Source: Dimorphilus gyrociliatus
Lineage: Eukaryota > Animalia > Annelida
Assembly (NCBI GenBank): GCA_904063045.1
Contig: CAJFCJ010000015.1
Location: forward strand, 868,001 to 932,000
Direction: 5' to 3'
DNA: 64,000 bases
Part shown: piece by piece, positions 3,410 through 51,547 of the stretch
How positions within the stretch are numbered: the stretch's first letter is position 1
Layout: the number at the start of each line of letters is the position of its first letter
Position numbers and translations under genes: made by a program
The notes under the pieces: model-generated
Databases searched by the model: none
What the model was told of the DNA's origin: nothing
Seen by the model: only the letters and a program-made list of their open reading frames with translations

Positions 3410-3454
<45 letters not shown>

Positions 3455-5525
3455 AAAGTATATAAAAAGAAAAAGAAAAAGATATAACACTAGTAATCTT
3501 TGTGTAAACGAAGCTTAAAAGCATTTCCGAATCCATCGTTTTTTCCACTCCCGTTCCCACTTTTTCTTTTTTCATGTTCTTTATCTTTTTTTTTTAATTA
3601 GACATTTATATATATATATATATATCTTAATTAAACAATAATTTTGATTATCCTTAATTAATAGTATTATATTTTTTTTCATATTTGAACCCAAACCAAA
3701 CCAAAAAATTCAAAAAATTGTACAAAATCAAAGTCCGACAACTAGTTCAAATATTCCTTTGATGAGAGTTGTTCAATCTGTGAAACATACAAAGAGAACT
3801 GGTTCGAAATTTATCCGCCAAGGTTGGATGGTGCATTATACTAATCGAGATAATCAAAGGAAGCGACATTTTTGGCAACTGGATCCAAATGCCATCACGC
3901 TATTTCCGAATGACAATACCAACAGGTTTTTCCTTAATCTATATAATATTTTTTGAAAGCTTTAACAAGAATAAGACAAAAATTCTTGTTTGTTTATTTG
4001 TTGTTTTTTGTTTCTTTCATAAAGATATTATAAAGAAATTACTCTTTCTGACGTTTCTTCAATGGAAATGAATGATGATATGGCTAACGGTAATTATGTT
4101 TTTGAGTTACATGTCTCAACGGGAACCATTTTTTACGTTGGCGCCTTGGCCGAAACTGATATTACCTCCGCTGAGAGTGGAATGGGTAAGGAACAAGCTG
4201 AATACTGGGAGAGTGCAATACGACAAGCTTTAATCCCTTTTACTAACGTTCGTATGGAGAAGAAAGAGGAGTCGGAAGTCGTAAAAGTTGAAAAGAAAGA
4301 GGAAAAAGAAGACATTAGCAAACTATATCAAATATGCCCCGATGACGTTTTAGGCTCTGGCCAATTTGGTATCGTATACGGAGGCAAACACCGTAAATCT
4401 GGCAGAGACGTGGCCATAAAAGTAATTGATAAAATGAGATTTCCTACAAAACAGGAGGCACAATTAAAGAATGAAGTTTCTATTCTACATAACATAAATA
4501 ATCCTGGAGTTGTTAATTTAGAGCATACGTTTGAGACACCTGAAAGAATATTCGTTGTTATGGAAAAATTGAAGGGTGATATGCTGGAAATGATACTTTC
4601 CAGCCCAAAAGGCAGATTAACCGAGCGTATTACGAAATTCTTAATTTCTCAAATTTTAGCCGCGTTACGTCATCTACATAACAAAAGTATAGTACACTGC
4701 GATCTTAAACCGGAGAATGTACTCTTATCCTCTGAAACACCATTTCCCCAAGTGAAACTTTGCGATTTTGGCTTTGCTCGTATTATCGGGGAAAAATCAT
4801 TTAGGAGATCGGTTGTAGGAACGCCAGCCTATCTGGCTCCAGAAGTTCTCAAAAATCGCGGATATAATAGATCATTGGATATGTGGTCTGTTGGTGTCAT
4901 TATCTACGTAAGTTTAAGCGGTACATTCCCATTTAACGAGGACGAAGAGATATCCGATCAAATACAAAATGCTGCATTTATGTATCCTCCTTCACCGTGG
5001 AATGAAATCTCTCGAGACGGTACGATCTAAATTTAATACTCTATTTAGTTAACTAATTAACAACATTCACTTAAGATTTTAAATTGAAAGAGAGTATTAT
5101 ATATAGTTATTATTTACTCCTTTTTAGCAATATTTTCCCTTTTTTCTTGTATTCTATTTTATTTCATTTTTTTTATTCCATAAATCATTTTTCTTCTTGC
5201 AAGAGTATTTTTTTTTTTACAACTTTTCAGCCGTTGACATGATCAAACGCCTACTTAAAGTAGAGATGACGAAACGTCTAGGTGTTTCGCAAGCACTAAG
5301 AGAATTGTGGATATACGAGGTCATTTTCCTACATATCTTAACAAAACAAAAATTTTCTTATCTATTTCATATTTGGCATGTTAATTAAGAAAACAAAGCA
5401 AAAAAAAAATCCACACTATTTTTTTTTAAAAAAACAATAATTTTAATTTTTTTAATTTTCTTGCTATTTAACATGCTTTTTGTTAACTAAAAGTTATAAC
5501 AGTATTATTGATAGTACTAATCATA

Positions 5526-5556
<31 letters not shown>

Positions 5557-7084
5557 GTGTGTGTGTGTGTGTGTGTCCTTGCTTTATTTCGTTTTAAAGT
5601 ATTACATGTCGTTCTATGGAAGACTAAAGAATGTACTTAATAATTGACAAACAATAACTACGAAGGATTTTAGTTTTTAAATGCGCTTCGCGTTTTGTCT
5701 TATGTTTTTATTCTTTTCTAAAAAATAGTTTTTTTAATTTTTTTCAAAGAAAAAACATATTAATTTAATTGAAACTATACAAAATACTCTTATGAACTTT
5801 TGCTCATTATTCTCCATTCTCCTTGAAACGCCAACATATCTTAGCCCTTGTCCTACCCCTGCTCCCTTTATATTAAGCATAAGAAAGAAAACTGTATCAT
5901 GCCTTTTGTGCTTTTGTCTCTTACAGCTATTGATATGATAAATAATTTACTGCAAGTGAAAATGCGTAGACGATATACGGTGGAGAAAACATTCTTTCAC
6001 GGTTGGCTGCAGGTATACTAATAAATAGAAATAGAAAAGAACCTAAATAGATATTATGGTCACATTTTTTTTTTTAATATATTATATTTTATTTTACACT
6101 TACTTTTGCAAAAGATTAGATAGAAAAGAGACCTTAGTTGCATTATATTTTTATTTTATAGATGGAATATTGGAATTATTTTTTATTATATTTTTCCTTA
6201 GTTTCAATATTTTATCTTATTGAATATGCATTATAGTATATACTGTATATATCTATAAATATATAAATATATATATATAGTATATTAATGTATATTCTTT
6301 AAGGTAAGACGAATGTTCACCTATTATTAGAGTAGTTTTTTTTATTCTTAGTTTTTGTTCAATTCCCTTGCCAAGAAGAGTATATGCTGCATGGACTTCT
6401 TTAAAATTCAGATGTACAGTATATACACATACATACATATATATATAACTACAATTAACAATATATACATACTGTATATATTGTATATAGAATGTACTGT
6501 ATGTATAAAAGTGTATGCTGTATATTATTTACTTAAAGGAGAATGTGATAGAGTCTAAATAAAAAAAAAAGGAAAAACAAATATATCTACTTATTTTGTC
6601 TTATTCTGCTGCTAATATTTATTTCTGCACTAGTTTTTTTGTATCTTTTCATTTTTCCGTGCATAAATCCTTGGCTACGCTGCTTTGATTTATAGATGTT
6701 TTTTTTTCTTACCTTTTTTTTATCACTAATTAATCAAATTAACCCTCTTTTTATAATATATAAATTTTTGTATAACTATATGCAATCTTTTACTAATTAT
6801 TGTTTCTTTTTTTTTTCCCTCCCCACATCCCATTCCTTCTTCTCCCTCTCTTCAAAAAAAAAAACAAAAAAAAAACAATTTATCTATTATAGGATTATCA
6901 ATGTTGGTGCGATTTAAGAAAATTGGAAGAGCACGTCGGTGAACGATACGTAACCCATGAAAGTGATGATGAACGATGGGAATTTTACCGAAAAGAGCAT
7001 AACTTGGAAATTTGGACAGAGAAGGGACAAAAAGGTGTGTCGAAGCACGAGATCTTTCCATTAAATAAATCGTCTAAATCATAA
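1221..7084 (+). CDS. PRKD1: Serine/threonine protein kinase D (ULD-C1a-C1b-PH-CAMK-type kinase); first coding exon(s) not located
   Basis: Exons ~1221-1610 (C1a [31 protein letters not shown]), 2197-2271, 2392-2584 and 2654-2734 (C1b), 2813-2915 or 3078-3222, 3734-3925 ([13 protein letters not shown]), 4025-5019 (kinase: [34 protein letters not shown]), 5231-5319 or 5927-6012, 6893-7084 ([22 protein letters not shown]). All GT-AG and phase-compatible. Confidence 0.96.
1732..1800 (+). CDS. Candidate 69-nt cassette exon of PKD ([23 protein letters not shown])
   Basis: GC-rich island in an AT-rich intron, flanked by AG and GTACTA; phase 0-0, no stop, frame-preserving. Confidence 0.5.
2813..2915 (+). 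CDS. PKD acidic-region exon variant X
   Basis: 103 nt, phase 1 to 2, encodes [34 protein letters not shown]; donor GTAAAA; acceptor ATAAAAG is weak. Confidence 0.65.
3078..3222 (+). CDS. PKD acidic-region exon variant Y
   Basis: 145 nt, phase 1 to 2, strong pyrimidine tract + CAG, encodes [48 protein letters not shown]. Confidence 0.65.
5231..5319 (+). CDS. PKD kinase subdomain XI exon, divergent variant A
   Basis: TTTTCAG acceptor, GTCATT donor; [30 protein letters not shown]; phase 1 to 0. Confidence 0.7.
5526..5576 (+). repeat. Compound (CT)n(GT)n microsatellite
   Basis: Visible dinucleotide runs in the intron between the two alternative kinase exons. Confidence 0.9.
5927..6012 (+). CDS. 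PKD kinase subdomain XI exon, canonical variant B
   Basis: CTTACAG acceptor, GTATAC donor; [29 protein letters not shown] closely matches the known PKD sequence; phase 1 to 0. Confidence 0.9.
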
Positions 7085-7425
7085 TTTTTTAACAATCAAT
7101 AACAAAAAATAAATTTACATACGGACATTTTAAATATATATATATATATATAAATTTATATATATATTTATATATATCGTTTTAAAACATATTTCATTCA
7201 TATTGTTATTGCGTCTTATTTTATATATGTATATGCATATATATGTGTATGTGTCCATGTATACATTATATACGATACTTACGACATATATATATATATA
7301 TATACCCTGTCTTTCCTGGCTAATTGGTTGTTCAAGCAAATATGTGTTATGAAAGAAAAGGATAAAAAATAAAAATTGCTTTTTTTCCAATAAAACAGAT
7401 TAGTACAGCTTCTTTCAAGTTTGTT

Positions 7426-44761: not shown

Positions 44762-47700
44762 ATATCCCTTCCCATTCATTTTATTTGTACAGTCTTCGTA
44801 TCGACGACTTATAGATGTTTTTCTCATCATATTATGTTTTTAACATGTCTGCCTTTTAAAAATGGATATACATAATATATATATATATATATATATATAC
44901 TGTACTTTATATATCAGAGGTTATATATAACCATATCTTCTGCACTATGCATACGAAACTTCACTTAATAACATATTTATGATATTTATAATGTCAAAAA
45001 AAAAACTATCATAAGAAAACCAAGAAAGAAGAATCTGAGATAAGGAAATATTTTTGATGACCCCCAGTCATTCAAAATGGAAGAGGGCAATTTTTGTGCA
45101 TTTAAATAACAATCTTCAGGTAAAACCTCTCTGCAACGCGAGTTGATTCTTTGTGATGTTTTTTTTTACTTTTACTTACATTGATTGAAACTGACGCGTT
45201 CAAAAGGTTTACTTGAAAATAAAATACAAATATCATACATGGAGAAAGTTTTTATTTATAGTTTATTTTTTATAAGATAGATGTCGCTATCTGAAAAAGA
45301 ATTTTTTAATACAGTATATAGTTCCTTTATACAAATCCATCTAGCGCTTGGTCTATATGAAATGAAAATATTATGCACGTAGTACAAAATATTTAGATAT
45401 ATAGATAAATATGACTGGAGAAAGGGTAACGTTCGCTAGGTTATTTAGTATAATAAATAAGGTTAGCTTCTTTTTGCTAATATAACAACATATTCTTACG
45501 AAGATGATATTTCACTGATCGCTTTTAATTGACCAGATTTTACCAGTCCTTTTAGAGGGACAGTTTTTTTTAATTATCTGAATAAATACTTCTATTTTTC
45601 AAACCGACCTTGGAACATATGTTTACGCCATTTAATAATTAAATCAGCTTGTTAGACTATAATACATCTGTTGACTGGGGTCAATTCTAGATCAGACATC
45701 CAACTATTTTGTCGTAGTGGCTAAATATGGTTCGGATGAAAGTTGAATGATCTATACTGTGCGACCTATTTAATCTAAAGTTTATTTACTTTATCTATTT
45801 TTTGCCCTTAAGAAACTAAATTAAGACTTTGTTTACTTTTGTCTTTTGAATTATGAATTATTAAGGCTATTATCTACATAATCGAAAGACAGTAAGATAT
45901 TGTTTATATTAGAATATTTAAGGTTCACCTTTAGTTTTGTTCTATTCTTAAAAGTACTCATCACTTCAAAATATTCCATTTTTTTTAAAGGTCAAGGTCA
46001 GTAACATAAGGTAAAATCATTTCAATGTACTTACATTGATTCGTTGAATTTTGTTCTTCAAAAGAAAATACATAATCAGAGTCTTCTATTTCGAATCGGA
46101 AGTCAAGTTAATATTGAATAAGTTTCAATTGATTTTTTTAATATTACATAGGCGGCTGGGTTGGTATAATTCCAAGAATTCTTCTCTAACTTCTAATATA
46201 ACGTCAACGCTCGCTTTCTTCCATGGAAATCAGTAAATTTAATTAAGAGTTTTACTTAAAAAGCGTAACATAATCTGAGAAGTATATGAAAATCAACTAA
46301 AAAAAGTACAAAGGAACCTGACATTAGGGTAGAGAGGAGAGTTGTATGATAATTCACTACAAATTATTGATATTCTTTATCATATTTATCAATCAGTTAT
46401 GGCACTTAAATTCCAAATTCCCTAAGGATAGGATGTCATATTCCTCTTTCCTTTCCTTCCTTCCTCCCACCCTCTCTTCCCCATTCCCCTCTTGATAGAC
46501 AATAATCTTCAGGCATCAGTCTCTTACAGAGATACCCACTCTTAAAAGTAGTTTTTTTTCTATATTAGATAATACAGGTTATTTAATAATATAAGATTTA
46601 TATGCAAACCCTCTCCCTCCCTACCTACCCACTTAATTATGCTATCTATATTTTATATTCTCTCCTCAAAATATCACTATTTAGTTTTACTTGTTCTATT
46701 TGGTAACAGCTTTTAAGTAGTCCTATATATATATATATATATATACGTAATTTCTGCTTTATTCTCCTATAATCACTATATATCTAAATGAAAGGGTTTC
46801 TGATATATTCTAATCCATTTGTGGAAGAGATGATATATTTTTAAGTAACATAGACATAAAAAAGTGTATGATATCTGCTGTTATTTATTAAAATATGCCT
46901 ATTGGTAATGTCTGTTCAAGGATTATAGATTTTAGCTGTTTTTTATATATATGCAGTATATATATTGATATATATATAAGAAATAGCACTTAAATATTGT
47001 ATATATCACAAAGTATATATATTACGTATTATCTATAATTTACACAACAGCTGGTTATCTGGTATACAATTCATTATAATAAACTAAACAAGAAGCCAAA
47101 TTTTTATTAAGATAACTTAGAGATCTACATTAGCTATTATTAATAATAATAACCATCTACAAATTTGACAAACAATGCTTTTTATTCTTTCATTAGAGGA
47201 AATGCGAAAAAATTCTTCCTAGTATCAAGAAATCGTTTTTATTAATTAATAATCATTTTTTTTTTCAAATTCAATGCTTTGTTCCTTAATGATTTAATTT
47301 AGAATAGAATTAGGAAGTAATTCATTTTAATTATCAATCATTATAATTGCTTAATTAGCATATTAAAAATAGCTTTATTTGTTTTTAAATCCGATAGATG
47401 TCGCTTCTTTTTTTAAATAATGACCCTAATGTGGTATAAATTTATATATTATTCCGTTAATAATAAACAAACATTTCATCTCTTTGTCGTTTTTATTACA
47501 AATGATTATATACAATATATTTACTATATAATAACACATTTTATTATCCTAATAATGCTATCTATCATTTTTCCAATATGGAAAAAGAGAGGATTCTTAA
47601 TGACTGTAAATTATGAAAATGATTGATATTGAACGTTACTGTCCAAATCATTGATTTTATCTATATCTTCTTTTGGTCTTTATATTTATATTTTGATAAT

Positions 47701-47919: not shown

Positions 47920-49557
47920 ATGACTTCTAAGACTTTCTTTCTAATTGTTTTTCTGGGTTTTGCGGGAGTATGCTATACTGCAAAAGTTGCTCTTGTACCG
48001 GTAAGTAACTTTTTTTCCACTTATTTTTAGCCTATTAACGAGAATATTGATTGGTGACATTTATAGATGAGTCTAGGAAGTCATATTTTGTTTTTTGCCC
48101 GTTTTGGCGAGGCACTCGTGAAAGAGGGACACGAAGTTCACATGATATTATCATCTACCGTAAAAATTCCCGGAGGAGATTCCACCTCAAATATAATTTG
48201 GAAAAGATTCGAAATAAGCAATCATACGACATCCTTAAATTCTAAAAGAGCCTCTCAGGTACATGTTAATGTAGCATTGGATAATTCAACTTTTGGGTTC
48301 ATTTGGTCTATGCTACCAATAGCTGATTTATATAAGGAGGCTGTAGCGGGAGAATGCGAGCAGTTATTGAATAATTCACAAAATTGGAAGATTATGGAAG
48401 ATGAACATTATGATTTTATTGTTTTGGATTATATTTATCCTGTTTGCCATATCGTTATACCTTTTAAACTCAATATTCCTTTTGGATTTCTTAGTATACC
48501 ATCATCAACAATGAATTTTAGAGTTCCGTCTTTGCCATCATTTGTTCCCTCCAGAGTACTTCCCACGGATCTACCAATGACTTTTAAGTATAGATTAATG
48601 AACTTTCTATTAGAAGGCTATGCAAGACTGATGGCATCATTCGTATTCCCGTCTACATATCTAGATAAATATTACGAAAATACACGGGGATTAACTGTAA
48701 TGAATGCAATGTCTGAGGCATCAATCTGGTTTTTTTTAGAAGAACAACTCGTTAATACGCCTCAACCAAGGATGCCAAATACAGTTGATGTTGGTGAAGT
48801 AGTCATTCAAGAGATTAAACCATTAGATAAAGAGTGGTCTTTGCGAATAGATAGTATTAACCGTCCAATAGTTATTGTATCGTTGGGTTCTTTCTGTAAT
48901 TTTATACCCGAACATTTAGAGGCGGAGTTTTGTAAAGCTTTCTCTGCAATGAAACAGTTCTTTTTCATATGGAAAGTAGGCGAACTAGGTTTATGCGAAG
49001 AAGAAAACGTTTATACATCAAAATGGATTCCCCAGAAAGAACTTTTGTCCAATAATAAAGTGAAAGTATTCGTAACACACGCCGGATTGAATAGCATTAT
49101 AGAAACATCGTATTACAGAGTCCCTGTAGTTAGTATACCAATATTTGCAGATCAACTTTTTAACGCTAAAATGGCCGAACAAAATGGGTTTGGAACAACA
49201 TTAACATTGGTGACACTACAATCAAATCAACTTGTAGAAGCAATAACTAAAATTTACAATAATTCTGATTACTTTAATAATATTAAAAACATATCGGAAT
49301 TAATGAGAATGAAGATAAAAGCTTCTTCCAATATTCAAAAAGCATCGTACCTTATTAATCATGTTGTCAAATTCGGAGATGAAAGAATAAGATCATCAGC
49401 CTATCATTTAAATTTATTTCAATTTTTGATGATTGATATTTTTCTTACAATATTCTTATCTTTAATGTTAATGATACTAATTAGCATATTTACTATTTAC
49501 TATCTGTGTATTAAAACGAGGTGCTTTAAAGCTAAAAATAAAACAAAAAAAGACTAA
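47920..49557 (+). CDS. UDP-glucuronosyl/glucosyltransferase, paralog 1
   Basis: Signal-peptide exon 47920-48000, exon 48067-49557; catalytic-His context SHI; signature WIPQKELL..VFVTHAGLNSIIE...PIFADQ; C-terminal TM and KTKKD tail. Confidence 0.94.
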
Positions 49558-49902: not shown

Positions 49903-51547
49903 ATGAGAGGCATTCTTCTTTTCTGTCCTGTTGTTTTGATATGCTCTCTGGAGGCTGCAAAAGTTGTCCTCATTCCAGTAAGTACACTATTGATATCATG
50001 AAGTTACCTTCGCTGTAATATACAATTTAATAAACGTTTATTTTCTTTCTACTTCATAGGCCAACGCTCCAAGTCATGTCATATACTTTACGAAACTCTC
50101 TAATGCTTTACAAAAAGAAGGTCATGAAGCTCATGTCTTGTTGTCCTCTAATTCTGAAGTACCAGGGTTCGTTAAAGACTCCAAACAAACCCAAATAAGA
50201 ATATTCAACGTCAGTAAAGAGTCTATAACTCTTAATTCAGAATACTCATCTAAACTTCATATAGACATTGCATTTAGTAAATCGCAACTGGAAGTCTTCA
50301 AAGGTTTGGGTAGACTTGTTAGTCTTCACGAGGAAGCGATTGGAGCCGAATGCGAGCAACTCTTGAACAATACCGACAATTGGATGTCAGTTGAAAGAGA
50401 GCAGTACGATTTCGCAATTATCGATGTTCTCTATCCTGCTTGTCAGCTAGCTATACCGTTAAAACTGAATATTCCCTACGGATTATATGGACTACCTATA
50501 TTTAATTTTTTGATACGAGTTCCCTCTTTGCCTTCGTTCGTTCCAAATAGGTTATTGGCTCTCGATTTACCTATGACCTTTAGTCAAAGACTGATCAATT
50601 TTATATCTCAAATGTTGCTTCATTTCTTTTTCGTATTCGGTCAGAATGAACGATATTTTCGAAAGTACTTACCCACTAGACCAACGCTAGATGTATCGAA
50701 CTCTTTTATGAATGCTTCGCTTTTCTTTTTCATGGAAGAGCAAATTCTAACATTTTCACAACCAAGAATGCCTAATGCAGTTGATGTAGGCGATATAATT
50801 CCTCAAGAACCGAAACCTCTCGACGAAAAATGGTCAAAAATTGTTGAATACAACTCAAAGCCCATTATCCTAGTTTCACTGGGATCTTTTTGTAATTTTA
50901 TCCCCAAGGCTAAGAAAGACGAATTTTGCAAGGCGATGTCTTTAATGAAAGAATATTTCTTTATATGGAAAGTAGAAGAATTAGGCGGTTGCAAAAAAGA
51001 AAATATCCACGAAACTATGTGGTTTCCACAAAACGATTTGTTAGCAAATTCAAAAGTTAAGCTCTTTATTACTCATGCAGGACTCAATAGTATCATGGAA
51101 GCTGTCTATTTTGCAGTACCAATTGTCAGTATACCTGTATTCGGCGATCAGATAATGAATGCTAAGGCTAGTGAATCTAACAATTATGGTGAAACACTAT
51201 CGCTCAAAGATTTTGTAGCAGAAGATCTCGTATCATCTATAAAGAAAGTAATAAACAACAATTCCTACAAGCAAAACGCTCAAAAGCTATCTGAAATGTA
51301 TAGGTTGAAGAGAGCACATTCCATTAGTATAAAAAGAGCATCCTATCTCATAGATCATATCGTAAAGCATGGCGATGAAAAATTAAAATCTTCAGCAATC
51401 CACCTAAATATATTCCAATTCCTTATGTTGGATATTTACCTTTTTTTAACATTGGCTGCTCTGTTTACAATAATTCTCCTGTTTGGTGTTTCTACTCGTT
51501 GCTATAGATTATTTTCTAAACGGTCTAATAAAATAAAAGAGGATTAA
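49903..51547 (+). CDS. UDP-glucuronosyl/glucosyltransferase, tandem paralog 2
   Basis: Exons 49903-49977 and 50060-51547; SHV; WFPQNDLL..LFITHAGLNSIME...PVFGDQ; TM and KIKED tail; same intron position as paralog 1. Confidence 0.94.

Follow-up and report, generated by a model that had tools for sequence, protein, structure and literature searches.

A probable pair of tandem-duplicated, mutually exclusive exons for kinase subdomain XI in the sole protein kinase D gene of the annelid Dimorphilus gyrociliatus

Mutually exclusive exons (MXEs) are already known in kinases, and the closest described systems are those of JNK, p38α and Fyn. The JNK1/2/3 genes (MAPK8/9/10) carry exons 6a and 6b, which, like the protein kinase D (PKD) pair reported here, are tandem-duplicated exons in the C-lobe of a Ser/Thr kinase; choosing one or the other exchanges a short helical stretch of the surface, which changes the docking of partners or substrates and leaves the catalytic residues as they are. 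JNK is a CMGC kinase with the swap in subdomains IX-X, whereas the worm PKD is a CAMK kinase with the swap in subdomain XI. Exons 9 and 10 of p38α (MAPK14) resemble the PKD pair in phase (1 to 0), in having a length (80 nt) not divisible by three and in coding for a helical part of the C-lobe, but they represent another exon of the kinase fold, have been dated to vertebrates and are not homologous to it. FYN exons 7A and 7B (FynB/FynT) are likewise a tandem duplicated exon swap, one that tunes kinase autoinhibition and partner binding, and paralogues of this gene each retained one copy after gene duplication. In contrast to PKD, however, Fyn is a tyrosine kinase, and the swap affects the SH2-kinase linker and the ATP site of the N-lobe, not the base of the C-lobe.

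PKD is a central diacylglycerol effector. Vertebrate PKD1, PKD2 and PKD3 belong to the same family as the worm kinase, with the domain order ULD, C1a, C1b, PH, kinase and tail. Vertebrates possess three PKD genes, each with a single B-type (canonical) subdomain XI, whereas the worm has one gene and a choice of exons. A literature search identified no published exon switch in a PKD. MAPK8/9/10 and MAPK14 are included in human MXE catalogues, PRKD1-3 are absent from two of them, and the dkf genes are not mentioned in a survey of MXEs in C. elegans. A 2.8-kb intron of a gar PKD gene also contained no exon resembling exon A of the worm (see below). These observations are consistent with the preliminary description of the locus, which knew of no such switch in vertebrate PKDs. 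With this pair, PKD joins a short list of kinases (JNK, p38, Fyn) with a catalytic domain diversified by mutually exclusive exons.

The locus lies in a 64,000-nt window of the D. gyrociliatus genome; all positions given here are those of the window, and all features are on the forward strand. The gene encodes a PKD (PRKD) of the CAMK group. Its N-terminal region matched the Pfam domain Ubiquitin_PRKD1_N (E = 3e-15), followed by two C1_1 domains (E = 1.9e-15 and 2.5e-08), and the catalytic domain shared 64-86% identity with named PKD1/2/3 proteins of insects, fish, a scallop and others. The end of the ubiquitin-like domain and C1a are encoded at 1212-1640, in one or more exons with approximate borders that reflect ORF limits only, and C1b, the weaker of the two C1_1 matches, at 2452-2598. 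The next exon part, at 3759-3925 (donor CAG/GT at 3925/3926), was tentatively assigned to the PH-domain region by position and because homologues that align here carry PF00169; its 55-aa piece (3759-3923) itself had no Pfam match. A large constitutive exon at 4025-5019 encodes the end of the PH region and kinase subdomains I-X (Pfam Pkinase, E = 1.5e-62, profile positions 6-208 of 263), is 70-86% identical to named PKDs, was covered by RNA contigs in four runs and ends in phase 1 at the donor ACG/GTACGA. The last coding exon (6893-7084) encodes the PKD-specific tail motif DYQxWxDLRxLE and the TAA stop codon at 7082-7084. Analysis of the 77.9-Mb genome revealed a single PKD gene and no retrocopy.

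Between these two exons lie two adjoining, homologous exons. Exon A (5231-5319, 89 nt) follows a 211-nt intron (5020-5230) and has the acceptor TTTTCAG and a weak donor, GAG/GTCATT. Exon B (5927-6012, 86 nt) follows a 607-nt intron (5320-5926), has the acceptor CTTACAG and the donor CAG/GTATAC, and is separated from the last exon by an 880-nt intron (6013-6892). Both exons have AG/GT borders and run from phase 1 to phase 0, and with the carried-over G they encode 30 (A) and 29 (B) codons. Coordinates, splice signals, phases and translations all agreed exactly with the preliminary description. Its proposal that exon A is a diverged homolog of exon B was borne out by 11 identical residues and a BLOSUM62 global alignment score of 53 (z = 8.1), a score reached by none of 2000 shuffles. 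Exon B is canonical PKD, as had been proposed, with 62-76% identity to the corresponding segment in PKDs of many phyla (72% to that of gar). The placement in subdomain XI also held, but the restriction to the last helix of the domain did not, as the exon encodes αH, the invariant Arg and αI. Exon A aligned to residues 251-279 of CHK2, 250-276 of DAPK2 and 238-265 of CaMKII-delta, and the structural match of the upstream exon stopped at CHK2 residue 249, directly before this segment. A structure search found no solved PKD kinase domain; of the chains with solved structures, CHK2 and CaMK1 came closest. Both exons retain the residues on which the fold depends: the hydrophobic face of αH, the Arg partner of the APE glutamate, and the αI Trp. 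Most remaining positions differ: NN is replaced by KR, Q by K and K by E, for example, and αI differs over its entire face.

We examined splicing of the pair in Logan contigs of public environmental metatranscriptomes (runs X1-X4), not in reads from identified worm tissue. These analyses revealed the junctions 5019^5231 and 5319^6893 in X1, the latter also in X2, and 5019^5927 in X3, all within the 2-nt ambiguity of the aligner. Each of the two exons was therefore seen spliced at junctions predicted from the two-isoform model. The most complete evidence was a single 448-nt contig from X1 (record 3) with 0 mismatches, in which the upstream exon, exon A and the last exon were joined (4818-5019, 5233-5317 and 6891-7049), with a synonymous CC>CT at the junction, and exon B was skipped. 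A contig from X2 (record 8) joined exon A to the last exon (5238-5317 to 6891-7092). The upstream exon was joined to exon B in X3 (5017>5925), with a short side of only 29 nt, and the joint from B to the last exon (6012^6893) was absent among the RNA contig matches listed. No joint between A and B was present among the contig joints listed, which is to be read with the reservation that contigs prove the presence, not the absence, of transcripts carrying both exons. Exon A was the sole form in X1 and X2. The fourth run, X4, represents a relative with about 93% identity (66 differences in 956 nt; 6.9% in the upstream exon), and in it exon A was at least as deep as exon B, with unitig depths of 182 for its exon A (A′), 134.6 for B and 293.9 for the upstream exon; these values are contig-based and their ratios are not reliable. 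Exon A is thus a major isoform rather than noise. The best explanation of these data, to which we assign a probability of roughly 85%, is a real mutually exclusive exon pair, produced when the subdomain XI exon of the sole PKD gene was duplicated in tandem.

To place the pair in a wider context, PKD loci of other animals were searched for an A-like exon. One was present in the scallop Argopecten irradians (locus L004), as might be looked for in an annelid or mollusc PKD under the preliminary description. It is unannotated, spans 49430-49518 (89 nt), is bordered by ag/gt, shares the phase of the worm exon, matched Pfam Pkinase at positions 236-263 (E = 0.02), and lies between the upstream exon (ending at 47159) and an 86-nt B exon (51169-51254). 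The worm and scallop A exons shared only 8 of 30 residues (27% identity), and each resembled B-type sequences more than it did its counterpart. Given this low identity, the case for their common ancestry is based on where the exons lie, on their order and on lengths of 89 and 86 nt in both species. From this comparison the pair probably predates the split between annelids and molluscs, and the scallop exon also suggests that an isoform is missing from present mollusc gene models.

No A-like exon was found in the PKD loci of tick, a monogenean flatworm, gar and several arthropod-like sequences, and no A-type sequence was found among 120 plus 7 PKD proteins. The members of ten PKD clusters were all B-type. 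Among 80 JGI metagenome and metatranscriptome loci, every spliced PKD was B-type, and the genomic loci had introns too short for an A exon or no A-like match. The metagenome contigs L048, L050 and L051 carry PKD exons of vertebrate type and may be mammalian or human. Word searches with the ORFs around the worm and scallop A exons returned no candidates, and such pieces are probably excluded there by length filtering and gene calling. When 1.84 billion representatives were queried with the scallop exon A, the hits were limited to a repeat protein and a multi-kinase CAMK protein. Since clustering at 50% identity groups an isoform together with its B-type sibling, this null result is no proof of absence. 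A more far-reaching reading is possible but, in our judgment, somewhat doubtful: an ancient spiralian pair, shared at least by annelids and molluscs, in which B is frozen and A provides a fast-evolving, lineage-specific docking or autoinhibition surface, so that selecting an exon would let one gene fill the role that three PKD genes have in vertebrates, and the selection would change from one sample or stage to another.

The alternative that survives best, although we consider it improbable, is that exon A is present in real mRNAs but its isoform is not a working kinase, being instead impaired, acting as a regulatory form (decoy or dominant-negative) or drifting under relaxed selection. Fast evolution of the exon would fit this reading. 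Exon A′ of X4 had about 10 differences in 87 nt compared with the worm, including AVD>AIM at its start, against the 6.9% of the upstream exon and 0 differences in the 89-nt unitig of exon B. Neither X4 nor the scallop A-like exon keeps the Asp of the A-x-D motif, and the low identity of the worm and scallop A exons points the same way. In contrast, the ORF, splice sites, invariant Arg, Trp and hydrophobic heptad are all preserved in worm, relative and scallop. Exon A alone also matched the general Pfam Pkinase model (positions 237-263 of 263, E = 0.044) with a score of 13.6 bits, compared with 13.8 bits for the scallop B exon and no match for the worm exon B, and A was the dominant form in two runs.

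A second alternative, that exon A is a decaying duplicate (pseudoexon) seen only through splicing noise, is very unlikely. Its weak donor would suit a pseudoexon, as would the absence of A-type sequences from the database proteins and metatranscripts searched outside the lineage. The RNA contigs largely refute this reading, however: the assemblies of X1 and X2 contained no form other than A, exon A was deeper than B in X4, and it remains in frame to the normal stop codon. The preliminary description had named an exon A that is never spliced and that has stops or frameshifts in related genomes as the result that would speak against it; the exon was instead spliced, and its ORF and splice sites were intact in the relative.

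Equally slight is the probability that the A and B contigs derive from separate strains or cryptic species with one exon each and no alternative splicing per animal, a reading suggested by the environmental origin of the metatranscriptomes and by the reference-like X1 with A only and the variant strain X3 with B only; against it, X2 and X3, which come from the same study, shared the same SNPs (4136, 4748, 4811, 4850, 4853 and 4943) and yet contained A and B, respectively, X4 had both exon unitigs at high depth with one upstream-exon contig, and both exons are intact in the reference genome. A retrocopy was excluded as the origin of the spliced contigs because exon A, like the tail exon, occurs only once in the 77.9-Mb genome.

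Under the mutually exclusive exon model, each mRNA would take either exon A or exon B, giving two full-length PKDs that differ only in the 29-30 residues of αH and αI at the bottom of the C-lobe. Both isoforms are predicted to retain kinase activity, with the difference lying in a surface for docking or autoinhibition and not in catalysis. A natural two-state swap of αH-αI with all else constant implies that this surface probably matters functionally, and it offers a ready-made experiment on docking partners, whether regulatory domains, substrates or scaffolds.

Exclusivity would be enforced mainly by the reading frame. Joint inclusion of A and B shifts the frame, as had been predicted, with a stop codon 9 nt into exon B; this stop lies upstream of the last junction, and an mRNA carrying both exons should therefore be degraded by nonsense-mediated decay (NMD). 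When neither exon is included, a stop codon follows after 16 codons, and the product would have a truncated domain. Steric exclusion is unlikely as the mechanism because the 607-nt A-B intron is too long. In JNK genes exclusivity is achieved by incompatibility of U2 and U12 introns, whereas the worm PKD introns have ordinary GT-AG ends. The donors GTACGATC, GTCATTTT and GTATACTA had no match to the U12 donor consensus RTATCCTT, and this type of MXE was ruled out; no TCCTTAAC-like branch site was found before 6893. When docking and selector RNA elements that could pair, as in Dscam and ATE1, were sought, the 25 longest inverted repeats in 5020-6892 were all low-complexity pairs of A/T runs with 70-85% complementarity. 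The YCAY cluster reported before exon A in the preliminary description is present, with three motifs within 26 nt (5164-5188; starts at 5164, 5178 and 5185). Its caution that the cluster is weak evidence for NOVA-type regulation was justified, since three or more YCAY motifs occur in 0.5% of 30-nt windows across the AT-rich 64-kb stretch. A (CT)n(GT)n microsatellite lies within the intron between exons A and B, at about 5527-5577.

The PKD (protein kinase D) gene of Dimorphilus gyrociliatus contains two alternative exons for kinase subdomain XI. Splicing of each one follows the predicted junctions, and the reading frame is kept only if exactly one of them is used. The gene lies on the forward strand within the first 7.1 kb of the window, and its pieces matched the PKD ubiquitin-like, C1a, C1b and kinase domains in Pfam. 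The upstream kinase exon (4025-5019) shares 64-86% identity with database-named PKD1/2/3 from insects, fish, scallop and others, and ends one base into a codon (ACG/GTACGA). It is followed by exon A at 5231-5319 (89 nt; acceptor TTTTCAG/, donor GAG/GTCATT; 30 codons with the carried-over G) and exon B at 5927-6012 (86 nt; acceptor CTTACAG/, donor CAG/GTATAC; 29 codons with the carried-over G), a position and layout that exactly match the preliminary description. The last coding exon, also on the forward strand, begins at 6893 and supplies the PKD-specific tail, closed by a TAA at 7082-7084; the three introns around A and B measure 211, 607 and 880 nt. Joint inclusion, which had been predicted to break the frame, brings a stop codon into frame 9 nt inside exon B, and skipping of both exons leads to a stop after 16 codons.

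Evidence for splicing came from Logan contigs of metatranscriptome and unlabelled environmental runs, four of which (X1-X4) were aligned to 4062-7100. The presence of the worm's transcripts in coral and marine samples is consistent with a small marine worm. X1 (RNA, coral metatranscriptome) yielded one 448-nt contig that covers 4818-5019, 5233-5317 and 6891-7049 with 0 mismatches. The apparent 2-nt shifts at its borders arise because exon A and the intron before 6893 both end in AG, and the contig is thus a complete upstream-A-last splice, in frame and with B skipped. CT replaces the genomic CC at 5231-5232 in this contig (GCC to GCT); this strain difference at the splice border, C5232T, is synonymous (Ala). 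A 415-nt contig from X2 joins 5238-5317 to 6891-7092 and continues into the 3' UTR. X3 belongs to the same study as X2, with upstream-exon SNPs common to both, and one of its contigs shows the upstream-to-B splice as a joint between 5017 and 5925. The letters at this joint are AG instead of CG (GAC to GAA), so that C5018A replaces the Asp of the upstream exon's final complete codon with Glu; the same change is found at the upstream-exon end in X4 (...CAAGAAG/CT), and Glu or Asp occupies this position in most PKDs. The junctions foreseen in the preliminary description were recovered as upstream-A and A-last in X1, A-last in X2 and upstream-B in X3, and the possibility that exon A is never spliced does not hold for X1 and X2. 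No A-to-B joint was present among the joints listed for the four runs, and the matches listed for them did not include a B-to-last joint. A retrocopy as the origin of the spliced contigs was ruled out, since the 77.9-Mb assembly contains a single copy of the exon A peptide and a single copy of the tail exon. Behind the PKD gene itself, the highest kinase-domain match in the worm genome had only 40% identity, indicating a single PKD gene.

X4 derives from a close relative of the worm, with 66 differences in 956 nt of upstream exon (6.9%; 4062-5017). An exon-A homologue, preceded by 25 nt of upstream exon and followed by a further 30 nt, makes up a 142-nt unitig with a depth of 182, and an 89-nt unitig (depth 134.6) consists of exon B plus three flanking letters that do not distinguish spliced from unspliced forms. 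Depth was 293.9 for the shared upstream exon and 31.2 for an unspliced piece over the intron-B border; the sum is roughly consistent (182 + about 103-135 versus 294), and A and B look comparably abundant in X4, contig depths being a rough guide. Exon B (5925-6013) showed 0 differences from X4 in 89 nt, compared with about 10 differences in 87 positions for exon A. The chance of 0/89 at the upstream-exon rate of 6.9% is about 0.002, which suggests that exon B may be under additional nucleotide-level constraint, for example from splicing control.

Alignment of A with B gave 11 identical residues (z = 8.1), a score reached by 0 of 2000 shuffles. Both exons retain the hydrophobic positions together with the Arg and the Trp, and the majority of the remaining positions differ. 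Exon A alone matched the Pfam kinase model at 237-263 of 263, its last 27 positions (E 0.044); exon B alone gave no match to this general model. In comparisons with solved structures, the match of the upstream exon stops at CHK2 residue 249, and exon A aligned with CHK2 251-279, DAPK2 250-276 and CaMKII-delta 238-265. Exon A therefore begins where the upstream exon's match stops, and continues the kinase fold in register. The segment had been identified as the last helix (subdomain XI); the segment was right, and it holds slightly more, which by comparison with PKA we take to be helices alphaH and alphaI with the invariant Arg, partner of the APE glutamate, between them. The sole other match of exon B in the worm genome (L003 1501-1587; G000:C6:690052-690138; 45% identity) falls on the exon for subdomain XI in another CAMK-group kinase, an exon that starts at the same fold position.

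Exclusivity would be achieved through the reading frame together with nonsense-mediated decay of double-inclusion mRNA, because the stop in exon B precedes the final exon junction. The sequence gave no evident sign of the usual special mechanisms: the intron between A and B, at 607 nt, exceeds the length at which steric hindrance could act, the donors (GTACGATC, GTCATTTT, GTATACTA) are not of the U12 type, and the 25 longest inverted repeats in 5020-6892, examined as candidate RNA-pairing elements, were all A/T runs. The intron separating A and B carries a compound (CT)n(GT)n microsatellite at 5527-5577. The donor of exon A is weak, with C at +3, and this feature and a small upstream YCAY cluster, itself weak evidence, may leave room for regulated choice. 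Both isoforms retain the core residues and would for that reason fold as kinases; the difference between them would lie in the alphaH-alphaI surface, at the bottom of the C-lobe. PKA uses this region as a docking surface for the regulatory subunit, and in CaMK/DAPK-type kinases it lies just before the autoregulatory segment; the swap could plausibly alter autoinhibition or partner docking.

Three cases of mutually exclusive exons (MXE) within a kinase domain are known, namely JNK1-3 exon 6a/6b, where U2/U12 incompatibility is used, p38alpha exon 9/10 and FYN exon 7A/7B. The PKD pair would join this class. PRKD1, PRKD2 and PRKD3 were absent from the accessible parts of two human MXE catalogues that do list the known kinase genes, a C. 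elegans MXE survey made no mention of the dkf genes, and no paper on a PKD exon switch was found in the literature searched.

The canonical (B-type) segment was present in 120/120 listed PKD homologues reaching the subdomain XI region, in seven further cluster members and in every spliced PKD among 80 metagenome loci. Genomic loci from tick, monogenean flatworm, gar and several arthropod-like sources share the phase-1 intron position, and none has an A-like exon in the interval from the upstream exon to B; several of these introns measure only 40-130 nt. The exception among the PKD loci searched was the bay scallop Argopecten irradians (L004), in which an open 89-nt stretch of the same phase, a candidate A-like exon (49430-49518; borders ...tttcag/ and /gttata), lies between the end of the upstream exon at 47159 and the 86-nt B exon (51169-51254). 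Its translation (AKNFIK...HPWLVQ) matched the end of the Pfam kinase model (E 0.02), slightly better than the scallop's own B exon did. We estimate the chance of such a match at roughly 1e-4 (E 0.02 / 24,736 models, with about 4 kb of intron read in three frames), before splice sites and phase are considered. In both species the A exon lies upstream of B, measures 89 versus 86 nt and has its extra codon after the Trp, and IK at positions 5-6 and Q at 21 are common to the A exons but not B. Only 8/30 residues are identical between them, each being nearer to B-type sequences than to the other A. On these sequence features, common ancestry of the two A exons is likely, at about two chances in three. 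Word searches and a search of 1.84 billion representatives returned no A-type protein, which is weak evidence because isoforms are hidden within clusters and short pieces are filtered out.

A separate PKD-like lineage (proteins P0087, P0094 and P0106, and metagenome locus L084 394-693) diverges strongly in subdomain XI (for example VNCIQNLLVVEHEARYTVDDAL...) and differs in the tail as well (D.QC..DI..LEEEVG), and represents a paralogue or distant clade and not an A-type exon. A metatranscriptome contig (L011 808-894) came nearest to the worm's kinase exon (86% identity), and its tail closely resembles the worm's. Its subdomain XI, of 29 residues (AEDIIIKLLQVNKRKR...), shares only 48% identity with exon B; another annelid whose B-type exon has diverged is a possible source. 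At 45577-46089 of the scallop locus, after the real exon 45379-45453, about nine tandem degenerate copies of a short exon piece form an exon-derived minisatellite inside an intron. Vertebrate-type PKD1/PKD3 exons are present in metagenome contigs L048, L050 and L051, which may be contamination of mammalian or human origin and were left out of further comparison. One 3.7-kb metagenome contig (L060) contains two different PKD-type kinase exons 2.6 kb apart (733-870 and 3445-3643), and may represent a tandem PKD gene pair in some animal.
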